Shown one piece after another: positions 2,798-13,360 of a DNA stretch of 64,000 nucleotides. Position 1 is the stretch's first letter. Each line of letters begins with the position of its first letter. The stretch covers positions 124,001 to 188,000 of the IMG/VR virus record IMGVR_UViG_3300023184_000024. One strand, 5' to 3'. A program made the translations under genes and the position numbers. The notes beneath the pieces are model-generated. The model saw only the letters and a program-made list of their open reading frames with translations, searched no databases and was not told where the DNA came from.

Positions 2798-2827
2798 TTG
2801 TGTTGTATTTAAACAACACCTATGTGG

Positions 2828-2856
2828 TTGACCAGAAATGCTCATTTTGCTATAAT
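2828..2856 (+). promoter_or_regulatory. sigma70-type promoter P1 of RNA operon
   Basis: TTGACC-17-TATAAT with extended -10 TG. Confidence 0.85.
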
Positions 2857-2925
2857 AGAAACAAGTTAAGAAATTAACTGATGTTGCAAAAGACCCAGGA
2901 AGTTGTAGGGTTTTTGCAAAATGAA

Positions 2926-2954
2926 TTGACCGGTATATGCCATTGTGTTATACT
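2926..2954 (+). promoter_or_regulatory. sigma70-type promoter P2 of RNA operon
   Basis: TTGACC-17-TATACT with extended -10 TG. Confidence 0.8.
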
Positions 2955-2979
2955 AGAGACTAGTTAGAAATTAACTAGA

Positions 2980-2991
2980 TGTTCTTTAAAA
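2980..2991 (+). promoter_or_regulatory. boxA-like antitermination site
   Basis: TGTTCTTTAAAA, right after a hairpin downstream of P2; resembles rrn boxA TGCTCTTTAACA. Confidence 0.7.
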
Positions 2992-3029
2992 AATTATTTT
3001 TCGTATAGTAGTCTCGGACTAGTTCCGGG

Positions 3030-3274
3030 CACTATATGTAAACGCATCGGGTTACCAACCCAGTAGGCAACTTGGCAAGAGACTAATCTGTGGCCGCACA
3101 GACTCTTCCAAGTTACATGAAAGATGGAAACGAAGCCGCAAGGTGGATACTGTACAATCGCGCTGGAACTAGTTGGTCTGTAATGTGTTTGGCAAACAAG
3201 TCCGTGGACGGCACGGTAGGGCAGGTTTAAAACTGCGATCGTTGTCAAACATCCCTATGTGTTTTCATATAGTG
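3030..3274 (+). ncRNA. unidentified structured RNA, about 245 nt (contains copy 2 of the stem element)
   Basis: closing stem CACTATATG-T-AAACGCAT / ATGTGTTT-T-CATATAGTG, with several internal hairpins and GNRA loops. Confidence 0.7.
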
Positions 3275-3280
3275 AATTTT

Positions 3281-3416
3281 TAATGTTGTTAGTTCTGCCT
3301 TCTGTAAGCCCTGGGGGAAACGTCAACCCTGAGTAACTATGTGTATAAACGGTACGTCCGGCCGGCAATTCCGTTGAGCATAGCAAATAGTATAGTTGGC
3401 AGAACTAACAATATTA
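3281..3416 (+). ncRNA. unidentified structured RNA, about 136 nt
   Basis: 19-bp terminal stem 3281-3299/3398-3416, inner CTATG/CATAG and AACGG/CCGTT helices. Confidence 0.6.
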
Positions 3417-3492
3417 GGTCTTAAAGTGTTCATGGACGCACGACGGCTTGTCACGCCGTAAGAGTGGGGATCGTTACCCCCTAAGACCGCCA
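3417..3492 (+). tRNA. tRNA-Asp(GTC)
   Basis: ACGGC-TT GTC AC-GCCGT, G73, CCA; atypical T loop ATCGTTA. Confidence 0.9.
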
Positions 3493-3497
3493 AGTTT

Positions 3498-3569
3498 TGT
3501 GGTAAGGAAAGTAAAAGGAGAATGGGCAAGTTGTTGGCTAGTCAACAACCAGATACCTCACCTGCCACA
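3498..3569 (+). ncRNA. small hairpin RNA candidate
   Basis: TGTGGTA/TGCCACA closing stem, GTTGTTGGC/GTCAACAAC apical stem. Confidence 0.4.
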
Positions 3570-3580
3570 TTTTAATTTTT

Positions 3581-3644
3581 GAGAGCCACATCGCCTGGAT
3601 ACCTCCTCCTCTTAGGAGCACTGGGTCCTGCAACCGTGGCTCTC
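3581..3644 (+). ncRNA. small hairpin RNA candidate with anti-SD-like motif
   Basis: GAGAGCCAC/GTGGCTCTC stem, CTCCT/AGGAG apical stem. Confidence 0.5.
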
Positions 3645-3652
3645 CCTTATTT

Positions 3653-3727
3653 GCTCGATTCGTCTATCGGTTAGGACATGCGGTTTTCATCCGCATAAGA
3701 GCGGTTCGACTCCGCTATCGAGTACCA
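3653..3727 (+). tRNA. tRNA-Glu(TTC)
   Basis: TGCGG-TT TTC AT-CCGCA, CCA. Confidence 0.95.
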
Positions 3728-3732
3728 TACAT

Positions 3733-3817
3733 GGAGATGCCGCCGCAATGGTGTGGCAGGGGACTGTAAATCCTCCGACTTCGGTCACGATAGGTTCGAT
3801 CCCTATCATCTCCACCA
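3733..3817 (+). tRNA. tRNA-Tyr(GTA)
   Basis: GGGGA-CT GTA AA-TCCTC, long variable arm, CCA. Confidence 0.95.
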
Positions 3818-4010
3818 GAACGTTCCGAGTGTCTTCGGATACTGTGACCCGCAGGATGAGAAGTAGTGTGACAACTACGGGTGGTAGTCTTCGAACCTAA
3901 AGGCCGCTGGCAATGCGAGAACTGTCCCTGTCGGGAAGCGGGTGGAAGGTACGTGTGAGGGGTATGATAGCGTCATATCTTTCTGTACTATAATTACCGC
4001 CGGGGGATGC
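3818..4010 (+). ncRNA. unidentified structured, probably pseudoknotted RNA, about 190 nt
   Basis: UUCG-capped hairpin, GTAGT/ACTAC hairpin, 3880-3888/3993-4001 stem, crossing ACCCGC/GCGGGT pairing. Confidence 0.65.
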
Positions 4011-4011
4011 A

Positions 4012-4084
4012 GAGCATATTGAAGCACATTGTGTGTCGGCTTGCTGATAAACTTTAAGTAGAGATAGTGTGTTTCAATATGCTT
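4012..4084 (+). repeat. inverted-repeat stem, copy 3 of AAACACAYT/AGTGTGTTT element
   Basis: GAGCATATTGAAGCACATT pairs with AGTGTGTTTCAATATGCTT. Confidence 0.7.
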
Positions 4085-4089
4085 TTTAT

Positions 4090-4167
4090 GCACAGGTGGC
4101 AGAGTGGTCCAATGCAACGGATTGCAAATCCGTAAAACCGTGAGTTCAAATCTCACCCTGTGTTCCA
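4090..4167 (+). tRNA. tRNA-Cys(GCA)
   Basis: ACGGA-TT GCA AA-TCCGT, U73, CCA. Confidence 0.95.
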
Positions 4168-4175
4168 ATAAGGTT

Positions 4176-4251
4176 GCCTCCATAGCTCAGTTGGTAGAGC
4201 ACTGTGTTGATAACGCAGTGGTCCCTGGTTCGAGTCCAGGTGGCGGCACCA
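4176..4251 (+). tRNA. tRNA-Ile(GAT)
   Basis: CTGTG-TT GAT AA-CGCAG, CCA. Confidence 0.95.
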
Positions 4252-4266
4252 TGTAAGATATAAATT

Positions 4267-4340
4267 GCGGGGTTCGTATAGTGGTAATACCTCAGCCTTC
4301 CAAGCTGATGCGGAGAGTTCGATTCTCTTACCCCGCTCCA
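4267..4340 (+). tRNA. tRNA-Gly(TCC)
   Basis: TCAGC-CT TCC AA-GCTGA, U73, CCA. Confidence 0.95.
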
Positions 4341-4345
4341 TACAC

Positions 4346-4541
4346 CCGGTTACACTTTGACGTCTAAAGTGGGTGGGGCAGTCACCATAGAAAGTGCTGG
4401 GTTTGTAGTGCAACGACCATCCGTACTCTGTCGTGGAGTGGCGGGAACGCATTAGGGGGAGAACACAACTTAAACCCAAAGCGAAAAATGTGTGGACAGA
4501 GTAACAGCTCGGTCCGGGGCCTATGTGGTGTAGGTAGCCGG
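4346..4541 (+). ncRNA. unidentified multi-branched RNA, about 196 nt
   Basis: CCGGTTAC/GTAGCCGG closing stem; CACTTT/AAAGTG, GGTG/CACC, TGGGTTT/AAACCCA, TAGTGC/GCATTA, GGAC/GTCC helices. Confidence 0.7.
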
Positions 4542-4554
4542 ACACTTATAAAAT

Positions 4555-4630
4555 GCGGGATTAGCTCAGTTGGTAGAGCGATACCTTGCCAAGGTATAGG
4601 TCGAGAGTTCGAGCCTCTTATCCCGCTCCA
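4555..4630 (+). tRNA. tRNA-Gly(GCC)
   Basis: ATACC-TT GCC AA-GGTAT, CCA. Confidence 0.95.
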
Positions 4631-5424
4631 TCAAATTCTAAATACTCAAATTCCAATGTTGGTTGTTGTACTGCAATCAGTAGATCGTCAGTGTTGACGA
4701 CTCGCCCCACAACCGGGTGTCCGGTGAATTGTTTTATTTTTTCAATTCCGTGTGTGGCAACAAACTCTGGTGCATGAGTATTGAACCAGTTGATGTAACT
4801 GTTCCAATCAAAATAATTGTCAGTGCCTGTGTTAGTATTGATTACTAGATTAATGCCGGGCTTGACTTGATCATGGAAGCGGCAAGTTTGCATGACGTTG
4901 GTGTCGTCTTGTTGTTCATACAGATACAACGGATGATGCCCTACATGCGGATTTTGCAAACGTATATCACCAAATTCAAGATTGATCTTGGCAGGGTATT
5001 CCAGTGGATCTATTGCAAACATTGTATCGTTGAACCATTCAATCTGCAACCAACTATTACGAAGGCTTCCGCTTTCAAGTGCGTGTAGTGCAAAATGTAG
5101 TTCGTGTAATATGTCATCATGTTCTGCAGGTATGTTTTCAAATCCATTGGCAAGATAAGCTTCAATGTCCTTGTGTAATTTTGTGGTCACTGCAACATTG
5201 TAAGAGTCACGTTGCCAATCCCAACCCAATTCTTGTTTGGCACGATGCACAAGTTTTTCAAAATATTGTATGGTGTATTTTTGAGGATCACGAAAAATAG
5301 CGTGTGGGTCAACGGTCCATTGTTGTTTAATCAAAGATAGATATTTCTTTGCCAAATTTGTATCGTTTAACTTGCAATACAAGGGCGGAATGTTATAAAA
5401 TTTTACAACAAAATCATGAGTCAT
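4618..5424 (-). CDS. hypothetical protein
   Basis: 268-aa ORF, TAAATA just upstream; stop lies within tRNA-Gly 3' end. Confidence 0.75.
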   Translation of the reverse strand: MTHDFVVKFYNIPPLYCKLNDTNLAKKYLSLIKQQWTVDPHAIFRDPQKYTIQYFEKLVHRAKQELGWDWQRDSYNVAVTTKLHKDIEAYLANGFENIPAEHDDILHELHFALHALESGSLRNSWLQIEWFNDTMFAIDPLEYPAKINLEFGDIRLQNPHVGHHPLYLYEQQDDTNVMQTCRFHDQVKPGINLVINTNTGTDNYFDWNSYINWFNTHAPEFVATHGIEKIKQFTGHPVVGRVVNTDDLLIAVQQPTLEFEYLEFDGAG

Positions 5425-5460
5425 TGATTATTTACAAGTTATTTTTGAACCGTTAGTTTT

Positions 5461-5535
5461 CTGGCCATAGTATAATGGATAATACAGCGGCCTTCTAAGC
5501 CGTCAATCTAGGTTCGATTCCTAGTGGCCGGACCA
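5461..5535 (+). tRNA. tRNA-Arg(TCT)
   Basis: GCGGC-CT TCT AA-GCCGT, CCA. Confidence 0.95.
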
Positions 5536-5545
5536 ATTAACCCGT

Positions 5546-5621
5546 GGGGGTGTAGCTCAGTTGGGAGAGCGTTTGCTTTGCAAGCAAAATGTCGCAGGTT
5601 CGATCCCTGTCACCTCCACCA
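5546..5621 (+). tRNA. tRNA-Ala(TGC)
   Basis: G3:U70, TTTGC-TT TGC AA-GCAAA, CCA. Confidence 0.95.
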
Positions 5622-8014: not shown

Positions 8015-8043
8015 TTGACTGCTGACTCAACATCTGTTATAAT
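8015..8043 (+). promoter_or_regulatory. sigma70-type promoter
   Basis: TTGACT-17-TATAAT with TG extension, upstream of tRNA-Leu. Confidence 0.85.
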
Positions 8044-12117: not shown

Positions 12118-12756
12118 TTGCCGGTACATTTAATCAATCCACTGCCGATATATCAAGAAGAGTCTGGCTATACTTTGTCAGACTCTGAATTATCGATACT
12201 CAACAATATCAAATATAACTCAGTGAGCAAGCCGTTTATCTGGGAATATGCATCAGAGTATACAATATTAGATCACCCTGGACTGGCAGATCTAAAGGCT
12301 GTATTACAACAGCACTTGGATAGGTATCGCAAAGAAATATGTGGTGTGGTTGATCAAGAGTTTTATATTACCAACAGTTGGTTAAGTAAAATCGAAGCTA
12401 TCCAAGGTAACTTATCTGAACATTCGCACGACAACAGTTTAATCAGTGGTGTGTTTTACATTGATGTCCCGCCCGACACTCCTTTGTGTTTTCGTAATCA
12501 TAGTCAGATTTTTAAAAAACATGATTTTTATTTTTCAAACAGTGTTGATACACAATACCGACAAGAAACATATTGTGTACCAGTAAAATCTGGAGACATT
12601 GTGCTATTCCCAAGTTGGGTAGATCATTACGTTGAAAAAAATCAAACAAGTCATGTTCGAAGAAGTTTGGCATTTGATAGTTTTGTTCGAGGGCTGTTTG
12701 ATGGTAAAATGTTGCACAACGATAAAACTGGTTTTAGTACGCTAATGATTAAATAA
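12118..12756 (+). CDS. putative 2OG-Fe(II) oxygenase (TIGR02466-like)
   Basis: HSH.NS.ISGVFY, GDIVLFPSWVDHYV, RRSLAF motifs. Confidence 0.8.
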   Translation: MPVHLINPLPIYQEESGYTLSDSELSILNNIKYNSVSKPFIWEYASEYTILDHPGLADLKAVLQQHLDRYRKEICGVVDQEFYITNSWLSKIEAIQGNLSEHSHDNSLISGVFYIDVPPDTPLCFRNHSQIFKKHDFYFSNSVDTQYRQETYCVPVKSGDIVLFPSWVDHYVEKNQTSHVRRSLAFDSFVRGLFDGKMLHNDKTGFSTLMIK

Positions 12757-12760
12757 AAGT

Positions 12761-13083
12761 TAAGACTGTATGAAGTAGAGAGAAAAGGATTCAAGACGCG
12801 GGGGCAGTGCCCGCCAGGTCCACCAAAAACACACTGCCAGTCGCGCTGGTTGTATGGTACTATTCTAGAAATAAGGTTCGAATCCTTAGTGTGTTTTTGA
12901 TGGGCCTGACACAGGATCGATTGGGTCAAGAGTATTGAAATGGACAGTCCGGCAATGTAGAAGCCGTTAGGGTTGGGGGAACTCGGCCGAAGACACAAAA
13001 ACCGTAAATGCAAACGACGAACAGTTCGCTTTAGCCGCCTAAACTCGGCTTAGGGTAGGAAATACCTCGTAACAGAAACCACC
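12761..13083 (+). ncRNA. ssrA: two-piece (circularly permuted) tmRNA
   Basis: acceptor piece ends ...GCGGG-GGCAGTG-CCCGC-CAGGTCC-ACCA (12825) before the coding piece starting GGGCCTG (12902); G3:U70; tag ANDEQFALAA* at 13010-13042; 5' end approximate. Confidence 0.92.
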
Positions 13084-13107
13084 AGCCCGCTTCGGCGGGC
13101 TTTTTTT
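13084..13107 (+). terminator. intrinsic terminator
   Basis: AGCCCGC-TTCG-GCGGGCT followed by a T run. Confidence 0.9.
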
Positions 13108-13120
13108 CTTGGAGTAAACT

Positions 13121-13360
13121 ATGGGCAATCAAACCGATTATTTTGAACGCATTGGCTACAAACCCACCTGGTATCTAGGAGATAGGGTGTTTGGGCATTG
13201 GAATAAAATTCCTTTTGTTGGAACAGTGGGCAATGATACTGTGATTAATCATACTGAAGGGCCACGGATCACTATTCATTTAGACCTTCCCATCAAGTAC
13301 AAGAGTCAAATACACAATATTATTGTAGTTAATCATAAAGATATCAAGCTTTACAAGTAA
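13121..13360 (+). CDS. hypothetical protein
   Basis: GGAG RBS, 79-aa ORF. Confidence 0.7.
   Translation: MGNQTDYFERIGYKPTWYLGDRVFGHWNKIPFVGTVGNDTVINHTEGPRITIHLDLPIKYKSQIHNIIVVNHKDIKLYK

Follow-up and report, generated by a model that had tools for sequence, protein, structure and literature searches.

A conserved promoter-hairpin-boxA leader of putative rRNA-operon type at the head of phage tRNA/ncRNA arrays

A tRNA/ncRNA operon in the 352,754 bp genome of a giant lake phage is preceded by a short leader composed of a sigma-70 promoter, a small hairpin and a perfect boxA. This architecture is conserved at the tRNA arrays of related phages, where the boxA is constant and the hairpin covaries, keeping its pairing while its sequence changes. 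The box is identical to a natural rrn boxA of the Burkholderiales, and the phage has no nus genes of its own. On balance, and by a modest margin, we favour the interpretation that this is an rrn-type boxB-boxA leader which loads host Nus factors for the tRNA/ncRNA operon, with both Nus binding and antitermination inferred.

Large phages carry arrays of 20-30 tRNA genes. To our knowledge there is no account of how such kilobase-long, ribosome-free phage tRNA transcripts escape Rho. Control by boxA is known from rrn operons, lambdoid nut sites, suhB and CRISPR arrays, and no report connecting boxA with phage tRNA arrays was found in the literature searched. If our interpretation is true, phages use the host complex for rRNA antitermination and chaperoning to make translation-related RNAs of their own, and the range of Nus/boxA control extends past the cases just named. 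The promoter-hairpin-boxA element is compact and portable, at less than 70 nt.

The tRNA region of the phage

The window, which is the whole 64,000 nucleotide stretch of DNA that was analysed, corresponds to bases 124,001-188,000 of the 352,754 bp IMG/VR virus record, and positions given here are those of the window unless stated otherwise. The record has direct terminal repeats and a G+C content of 42%, and the phage window recurs in lake and freshwater metagenomes. In the window, 27 tRNA genes along with a permuted tmRNA lie between positions 131 and 13,133, without exception on the plus strand. The leader region is placed between a Peptidase_S11 gene (2063-2797) and tRNA-Asp (3417), and downstream of boxA there is no plus-strand gene until 5668, the space being occupied by tRNAs and ncRNAs instead.

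The phage-encoded permuted tmRNA (12733-13133, plus strand) carries the tag ANDEQFALAA. Its Rfam matches are tmRNA_permuted with 111 bits and beta_tmRNA with 84 bits. Comparison of the tmRNA DNA with about 400 (401) class-level genomes and five chosen ones gave short conserved segments only and no close match, and the host is unidentified.

Promoters, hairpins and boxA

Promoter P1 (2828-2856, plus strand) is composed of TTGACC at 2828-2833, a spacer of 17 nt and the extended -10 TGcTATAAT with the -10 hexamer at 2851-2856, which gives an 11/12 match. P2 (2926-2954, plus strand) has TTGACC at 2926-2931, again 17 nt, and TGtTATACT with the -10 at 2949-2954, a 10/12 match. The original prediction, made before any database search, had claimed two tandem sigma-70 promoters 98 bp apart, and both the distance between the starts and the coordinates were confirmed by the sequence and by a promoter scan. 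The two promoters with their leaders are a tandem duplication, in which 53 of the 69 aligned columns are identical. Both are members of a set of about 40 near-consensus sigma-70 promoters found genome-wide, nearly all on the plus strand, P1 belonging to the family GGTTGACCAGAAAT..TTTGCTATAAT; given this membership, the host RNA polymerase is the probable enzyme. P2 is conserved in the relative L088, which keeps the entire P1/P2 tandem at 89% identity. The pair has been seen only in this phage and L088 and is a lineage-specific duplication. A GC-rich discriminator is absent at P1 and P2, the discriminators being A/G-rich (AGAAAC, AGAGAC).

A hairpin follows each promoter, as had also been predicted: AGTTAA-GAAA-TTAACT, with a GNRA loop, behind P1 (2864-2879, plus strand; -2.5 kcal/mol) and the boxB-like CTAGTTA-GAAAT-TAACTAG behind P2 (2960-2978, plus strand; -4.7 kcal/mol). 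The core of the P1 hairpin, GTTAAGAAATTAAC, is also present in 51 phage sites, described below, and the P2 variant GTTA-GAAAT-TAAC recurs in L088 and in a further locus, L449. The boxA-like sequence claimed to follow the hairpins holds for P2 only. There GTTCTTTAAAA (2981-2991, plus strand) is a perfect match to GYTCTTTAANA, with TGTTCTTTAAAA occupying 2980-2991; the hairpin ends 2 nt before the box, and the box starts 26 nt past the P2 -10. When the two copies are aligned, the box region behind P1 (GATGTTGCAAAAGA, 2880-2893, plus strand) is a degenerate copy and not a boxA, and the P1 box region of L088 is degenerate too.

The motif GYTCTTTAANA is found twice in the 352,754 bp genome, with about 2.6 occurrences expected. 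This count is not above chance and therefore the window alone proves nothing. The combination of hairpin core and box is unique to this locus in the whole genome, and the significance of the leader rests on its conservation in other phages, not on the motif alone. A boxC (GU-rich, of the UGUGUG or GTGTG type) 3' of boxA is absent from the window and from the phage consensus. With Rfam 15 only tRNA and tmRNA scored above thresholds, and nothing credible was found on the leader (2940-3430) or at 3800-4100.

Conservation of the leader in related phages

IMG/VR was scanned with a pattern made of the hairpin core and YTCTTTAAAA, in which neither the G before the box nor the G..C pair closing the stem was required. 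The scan returned 72 sites in 71 loci, about 66 of which are real and 51 distinct. The two features that had been left free, the G before the box (giving GYTCTTTAAAA) and the G..C closing pair, are each present in all 51 distinct sites. The distance from the end of the -10 to the stem is 8 nt in 42 of them, and in 47 the gap between stem and boxA is 3-4 nt. Same-strand tRNAs lie downstream at all real sites whose locus reaches far enough and a minus-strand tRNA at none, the first tRNA being 7-20 nt or 100-1,700 nt from the boxA module. A covariance model found one strong copy of the module per phage record. Conservation in relatives was a point on which the original prediction could have failed; as the boxA does not vary among the 51 distinct sites, the prediction is not refuted.

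A DNA search of related records also identified the leader in relatives. Apart from L088, these carry a single promoter followed by TGTTAA-GAAA-TTAACA, CTAGTTAA-GAAA-TTAAC(C)TAG or ATGTTAA-GAAA-TTAACAT, and the boxes behind the hairpins read TGTTCTTTAAAAA, AGTTCTTTAAAAA or CGCTCTTTAAAAA. Synteny through the upstream Peptidase_S11 gene gave 80 related loci, in none of which the leader adjoins the gene, and the radical-SAM gene used as anchor gave no relatives in IMG/VR.

The same pattern was run on 596 Gbp of bacterial genomes and gave 42 matches, which look like chance in A/T-rich DNA because a promoter and the G..C pair are missing from all of them except one or two. Among cultured phages (INPHARED), BLAST of the leader gave chance matches only, which lie between the tail and the head genes of RaK2 and within a CDS of KPN8, and no perfect boxA occurs in the tRNA regions of three large cultured phages, RsoM2USA, Pseudomonas D6 and KVP40.

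Two single loci deserve separate mention. A 7.5 kb contig from a Crocinitomicaceae MAG bin (L173, JBDNIA010000359.1) carries the complete phage module and 21 tRNAs, and is likely to be a phage contig mis-binned into a bacterial MAG. In the tRNA array of KVP40 (L409, locus 5380-5455) GTTCTTCAAAA, a single mismatch away from the consensus, stands 21 nt behind a GTGTTAAGATTAACAC palindrome; this candidate was judged too weak, and it may be a decayed relative of the module or chance.

An invariant box and a replaceable hairpin

In an unbiased scan, TATAAT-N6-36-boxA, the hairpin region was left free. It gave 75 distinct sites, 48 of them inside same-strand tRNA arrays. In 15 of these 48 array leaders the box comes directly after the promoter and the hairpin is absent, and in a complete phage of 172 kb (G006) both array promoters are hairpin-less. 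In the 33 longer array leaders a hairpin folds in 31, with 19 different 5' arms and with the loops GAAA (12), GCAA (4), GAGA, GCGA and GAUAA (3), so that 18 of the 31 are of the GNRA type. The modal gap between hairpin and boxA is 3 nt. The mean minimum free energy of the free segment is -4.55 kcal/mol, compared with -1.10 ± 0.22 kcal/mol for shuffled sequences, and the compensatory variants GTTAG-GAAA-CTAAC and GTTGA-GAAA-TCAAC are found in place of GTTAA-GAAA-TTAAC.

Covariation of the hairpin is clear only in this wider set. In the close clade the sixth pair of the consensus stem gave no significant covariation (34/51 paired, shuffle p = 0.14). Taken over both sets, the boxA is the invariant element and the hairpin a structurally conserved, replaceable accessory. 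An invariant box with an accessory hairpin is the relationship known for boxA and boxB of rrn operons, and the phage leaders are alike in this respect.

A scan of IMG/VR with the other main variant, GCTCTTTAACAA, added 11 further tRNA-array leaders, some of them with GNRA hairpins and one of them L449, which shares the hairpin variant of P2. The alternative host variant GCTCTTTAACA is borne by other phage tRNA arrays.

At the expected -35 position a number of loci (L274, L281, L286, L311, L317, L338, L339, L297) have GTGTACAAT or TGTACA and not TTGACA. Such boxA leaders without a TTGACA -35 could represent a different promoter class or host group.

Comparison with rrn leaders and other boxA systems

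The functional boxA consensus GYTCTTTAANA is given by Baniulyte et al. (PMC5725501). According to Stagno et al. (PMC3177189), NusB-NusE recognises 8 nt of boxA, of which G2, C5 and U6 are critical, and the phage box retains all three. Natural rrn boxes were surveyed in 27 sampled loci from the order of G025 (an Oxalobacteraceae MAG, Burkholderiales), at 91-250 nt upstream of 16S, where GCTCTTTAACA was found 12 times, GTTCTTTAAAA six times and GATCTTTAACA four times. As GTTCTTTAAAA stands in 6 of the 27 leaders, the phage box is a natural rrn boxA of that order, which fits the match of the phage tmRNA to the betaproteobacterial tmRNA model. Since phage boxA variants match host rrn variants, the variant could mark the host for prediction. 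Genes for NusB, NusG and S10 were not found in the phage genome, and therefore host factors would be used.

The leader of E. coli rrnB consists of the hairpin GCCGC...GCGGC, AC, TGCTCTTTAACAA and TTTATCAG; many phage copies consist of the hairpin, 3-4 nt, GTTCTTTAAAA and ATTTATCC. As in E. coli rrnB, about 3 nt separate the phage hairpin from boxA, and in many copies the box is followed by ATTTATC. As in bacterial rrn operons generally, one or more strong sigma-70 promoters, a hairpin and boxA head a long untranslated operon of stable RNA. Differences are equally evident. The phage leader precedes tRNAs and ncRNAs and not rRNA, its hairpin is only 5-7 bp long and A/U-rich, its discriminators are A/G-rich, and neither boxC nor a second, spacer boxA was found, whereas Burkholderiales and E. 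coli leaders have boxC. The tandem P1/P2 is a recent duplication of this sub-lineage only, and its likeness to the P1/P2 of rrn operons is superficial. Thus of the rrn P1/P2-boxB-boxA likeness that had been claimed, the boxB-boxA part holds, the P1/P2 part does not go beyond appearance, and boxC is missing.

With the lambdoid nut sites (boxA-boxB and N) the phage leader shares a phage RNA with boxA and a GNRA-type hairpin, which would engage host Nus factors. It differs in the reversed order, the hairpin being 5' of boxA, in the non-coding nature of the operon and in the dispensability of the hairpin in many phage relatives. No N homologue or RNA-binding protein was identified for the phage module, bearing in mind that N-like genes are not searchable by homology. 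Stringer et al. (2020, eLife) are reported to have described a boxA ahead of the CRISPR arrays of bacteria, Salmonella among them. The principle is shared, in that a boxA close to the promoter shields a long untranslated array of repetitive RNA genes from Rho, but the CRISPR case concerns a host locus, has no conserved hairpin and yields crRNAs rather than tRNAs. The system described in 2017 (PMC5725501) has the same GYTCTTTAANA outside rRNA; there, however, the Nus complex represses a protein-coding gene, while the phage array downstream is untranslated.

The downstream transcription unit

The interval from boxA to the first tRNA is a structured untranslated RNA (2996-3416, plus strand; minimum free energy -143.6 kcal/mol, z -5.25) with two domains, each closed by a long stem, and it is partly conserved in three related genomes (G005, G007 and G022). 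No Rfam family was found for this RNA or for the inter-tRNA spacers. Behind it follow the genes for tRNA-Asp, Glu, Tyr, Cys, Ile, Gly and Gly with structured spacers (3417-4630, plus strand). Between tRNA-Tyr and tRNA-Cys lies a conserved structured ncRNA of about 200 nt (3818-4035, plus strand), without an Rfam match and homologous in about 20 (18-29) related phage loci; of its 50 predicted pairs, 20 have compensatory changes. The ncRNA is extremely abundant in contigs of relatives from lake metatranscriptomes, where its depth is as high as about 4,000. Contigs from RNA libraries of relatives also map onto 2939-3222 and 3039-3168, and in one relative an RNA contig joins the hairpin region straight to tRNA-Glu, which is the layout of that relative. 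Being contigs, and from relatives, these metatranscriptome data are unable to reveal transcription starts, and DNA may be among them.

As to the RNA behind boxA, its closing stems are near-perfect (about 19 bp at 3282-3416) and reminiscent of RNase III processing stems. In many relatives the region behind boxA has a TATAG...CTATA hairpin followed by GGTTACC..TAGG.

A terminator-like hairpin with a T-rich tail (4712-4725, plus strand) is a possible end of the boxA-led unit. Antisense to the operon lies an ORF of 268 aa (4618-5424, minus strand) with gene-like codon usage, scoring 0.280 bits per codon as compared with 0.273 ± 0.078 in the training genes. It has no Pfam or PHROG match and no homologue in related loci, and appears to be a lineage-specific insertion which P2 transcription would cross in antisense. 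Because this minus-strand gene follows, the unit may end near 4712-4735, after about 1.75 kb; tRNA-Arg and tRNA-Ala (5461-5621, plus strand) are reachable from P2 only via antisense read-through. From 2960 to about 4730, the boxA-led unit therefore has a minimum length of about 1.75 kb; about 2.7 kb is attained only with antisense read-through of the ORF. A composition scan of the operon RNA for rut sites found no strong C>G tract, the RNA being G-rich and highly structured; this outcome is neutral, and therefore the need for protection against Rho cannot be demonstrated from sequence.

Proposed mechanism

In the mechanism which we propose, host sigma-70 RNA polymerase would start at P2 and also at P1, 98 bp upstream. 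Within the first 35 nt or so of the RNA, a short hairpin, in most cases with a GNRA cap, would be followed after 3-4 nt by a single-stranded boxA (GUUCUUUAAAA). This boxA is predicted to bind host NusB-NusE(S10) and so to seed on the polymerase a Nus complex of the rrn type (NusA, NusG, SuhB). Modified in this way, the enzyme would transcribe the untranslated, ribosome-free tRNA/ncRNA array fast and without Rho-dependent termination, covering at least 2996-4630 and possibly continuing through the antisense stretch to 5621. The hairpin would act as does boxB of rrn operons, as an accessory which prevents boxA from pairing and perhaps shields the 5' end.

The recruitment of host Nus factors, as originally claimed, is supported and remains inferred, there being no binding or read-through data. 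Against it stand the missing boxC-like GUGUG, the single 11-mer at chance level, other tRNA sub-clusters of the same phage without boxA (e.g. that of the promoter at 8015), the unidentified host and the negative result for three cultured phages.

Alternative explanations

The alternatives are all weaker than this mechanism, and none can be ruled out. The one that survives best, which we nevertheless regard as unlikely, is a lambda-N-like system, in which the GNRA hairpin is a true boxB for an unidentified small phage-encoded RNA-binding antiterminator; with boxA and Nus factors, the polymerase would also become resistant to intrinsic terminators. In favour of this are the GNRA tetraloops in 18 of 31 independent hairpins, with GAUAA pentaloops in three more, the invariance of stem and loop of GTTAAGAAATTAAC in a large clade, as would be expected of a protein-recognised hairpin, and the presence of terminator-like sites in the array. 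Against it, the order of hairpin then boxA is that of rrn and not that of the lambda nut site (boxA then boxB), 15 of the 48 array leaders are hairpin-less and others are non-GNRA, and no candidate protein was identified. A bolder form, also improbable, holds that the GNRA hairpin and boxA are a complete nut-type site with a polarity opposite to that of lambda. Its reader would be an undiscovered small phage antiterminator or a host protein cooperating with Nus factors. Were this bolder reading true, a large clade of uncultured lake phages would own a processive antitermination dedicated to tRNA/ncRNA arrays, and the leader RNA, being abundant, might in addition deprive host rrn operons of Nus factors.

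A role in stability or processing only, without Nus factors, is also doubtful. In this reading the terminal hairpin blocks decay that depends on the 5' end, and RNase E enters or cuts in the A/U-rich single strand and thereby frees the first tRNA. The hairpin does stand about 2-3 nt from the inferred start, given the distance of 8 nt from the -10 to the stem at 42 of the 51 sites, and the box is A/U-rich and often just 7-20 nt from the first tRNA. Nevertheless, a cleavage site would not fix the G, the C and every T of an 11-mer in lineages with wholly diverged hairpins, nor would it match both of the main rrn boxA variants found in one host order.

Still less probable is an operator at the DNA level, where the inverted repeat (+3 to +16) is the binding site of a dimeric repressor, from phage or host, which sets the timing of tRNA expression. 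The repeat is perfect and lies just past the start, and palindromes flank other promoters of the phage. However, 19 stem types covary with pairing kept and their loops are GNRA-enriched, which is a property of RNA, and the repeat is missing in many leaders that retain boxA. Equally remote is a Nus-factor decoy, titrating NusB/NusE off host rrn operons and so aiding the shutdown of host ribosome synthesis, for which the very strong tandem promoters, the identity of boxA with one rrn boxA of a host order and the abundant RNA of the region in relatives' metatranscriptomes would speak, and against which the single copy per genome and the constant tie to tRNA arrays point to a role in cis.

Some further readings of the hairpin were tried and rejected. 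A leaderless mini-ORF over it (ATG-TTA-AGA-AAT-TAA, encoding MLRN) has the T of its ATG replaced in 21 of the 51 copies (AAG or ACG), and in the window the ATG position reads AAG and TAG. As an IHF site the hairpin has, by inspection, two mismatches in the core, and as an RNase III site its stem is just 5-7 bp.

Other features of the phage promoters

Directly upstream of the P1 -35 is the palindrome GTGTTGT-ATTTAA-ACAACAC (2800-2819, plus strand). Palindromes of this type, (G)TGTTG(T), an A-rich loop and (A)CAACA(C), stand 5-25 nt upstream of the -35; within 55 nt upstream they are found in 13 of 55 strong promoters of this phage, compared with a background of 2.2%. A TGTTG-type palindrome also precedes the boxA promoters of many relatives. 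It is conceivable that these palindromes are a factor site or an insulator hairpin.

The phage also has an early-type promoter family, GGTTGACC(A/G)GAAAT..TTTGCTATAAT, whose members are near-identical and are followed by a conserved 5' UTR, ACTTGTATAGTAATTAAAAAGGAG; examples are at full-genome positions 1359, 2549, 116726, 117031, 284042 and 319936. The leader of P1, AGAAACAAGTTAAGAAA, resembles the UTR variant AGAAGTATAGTAAGAAACAAGGAG of this family.
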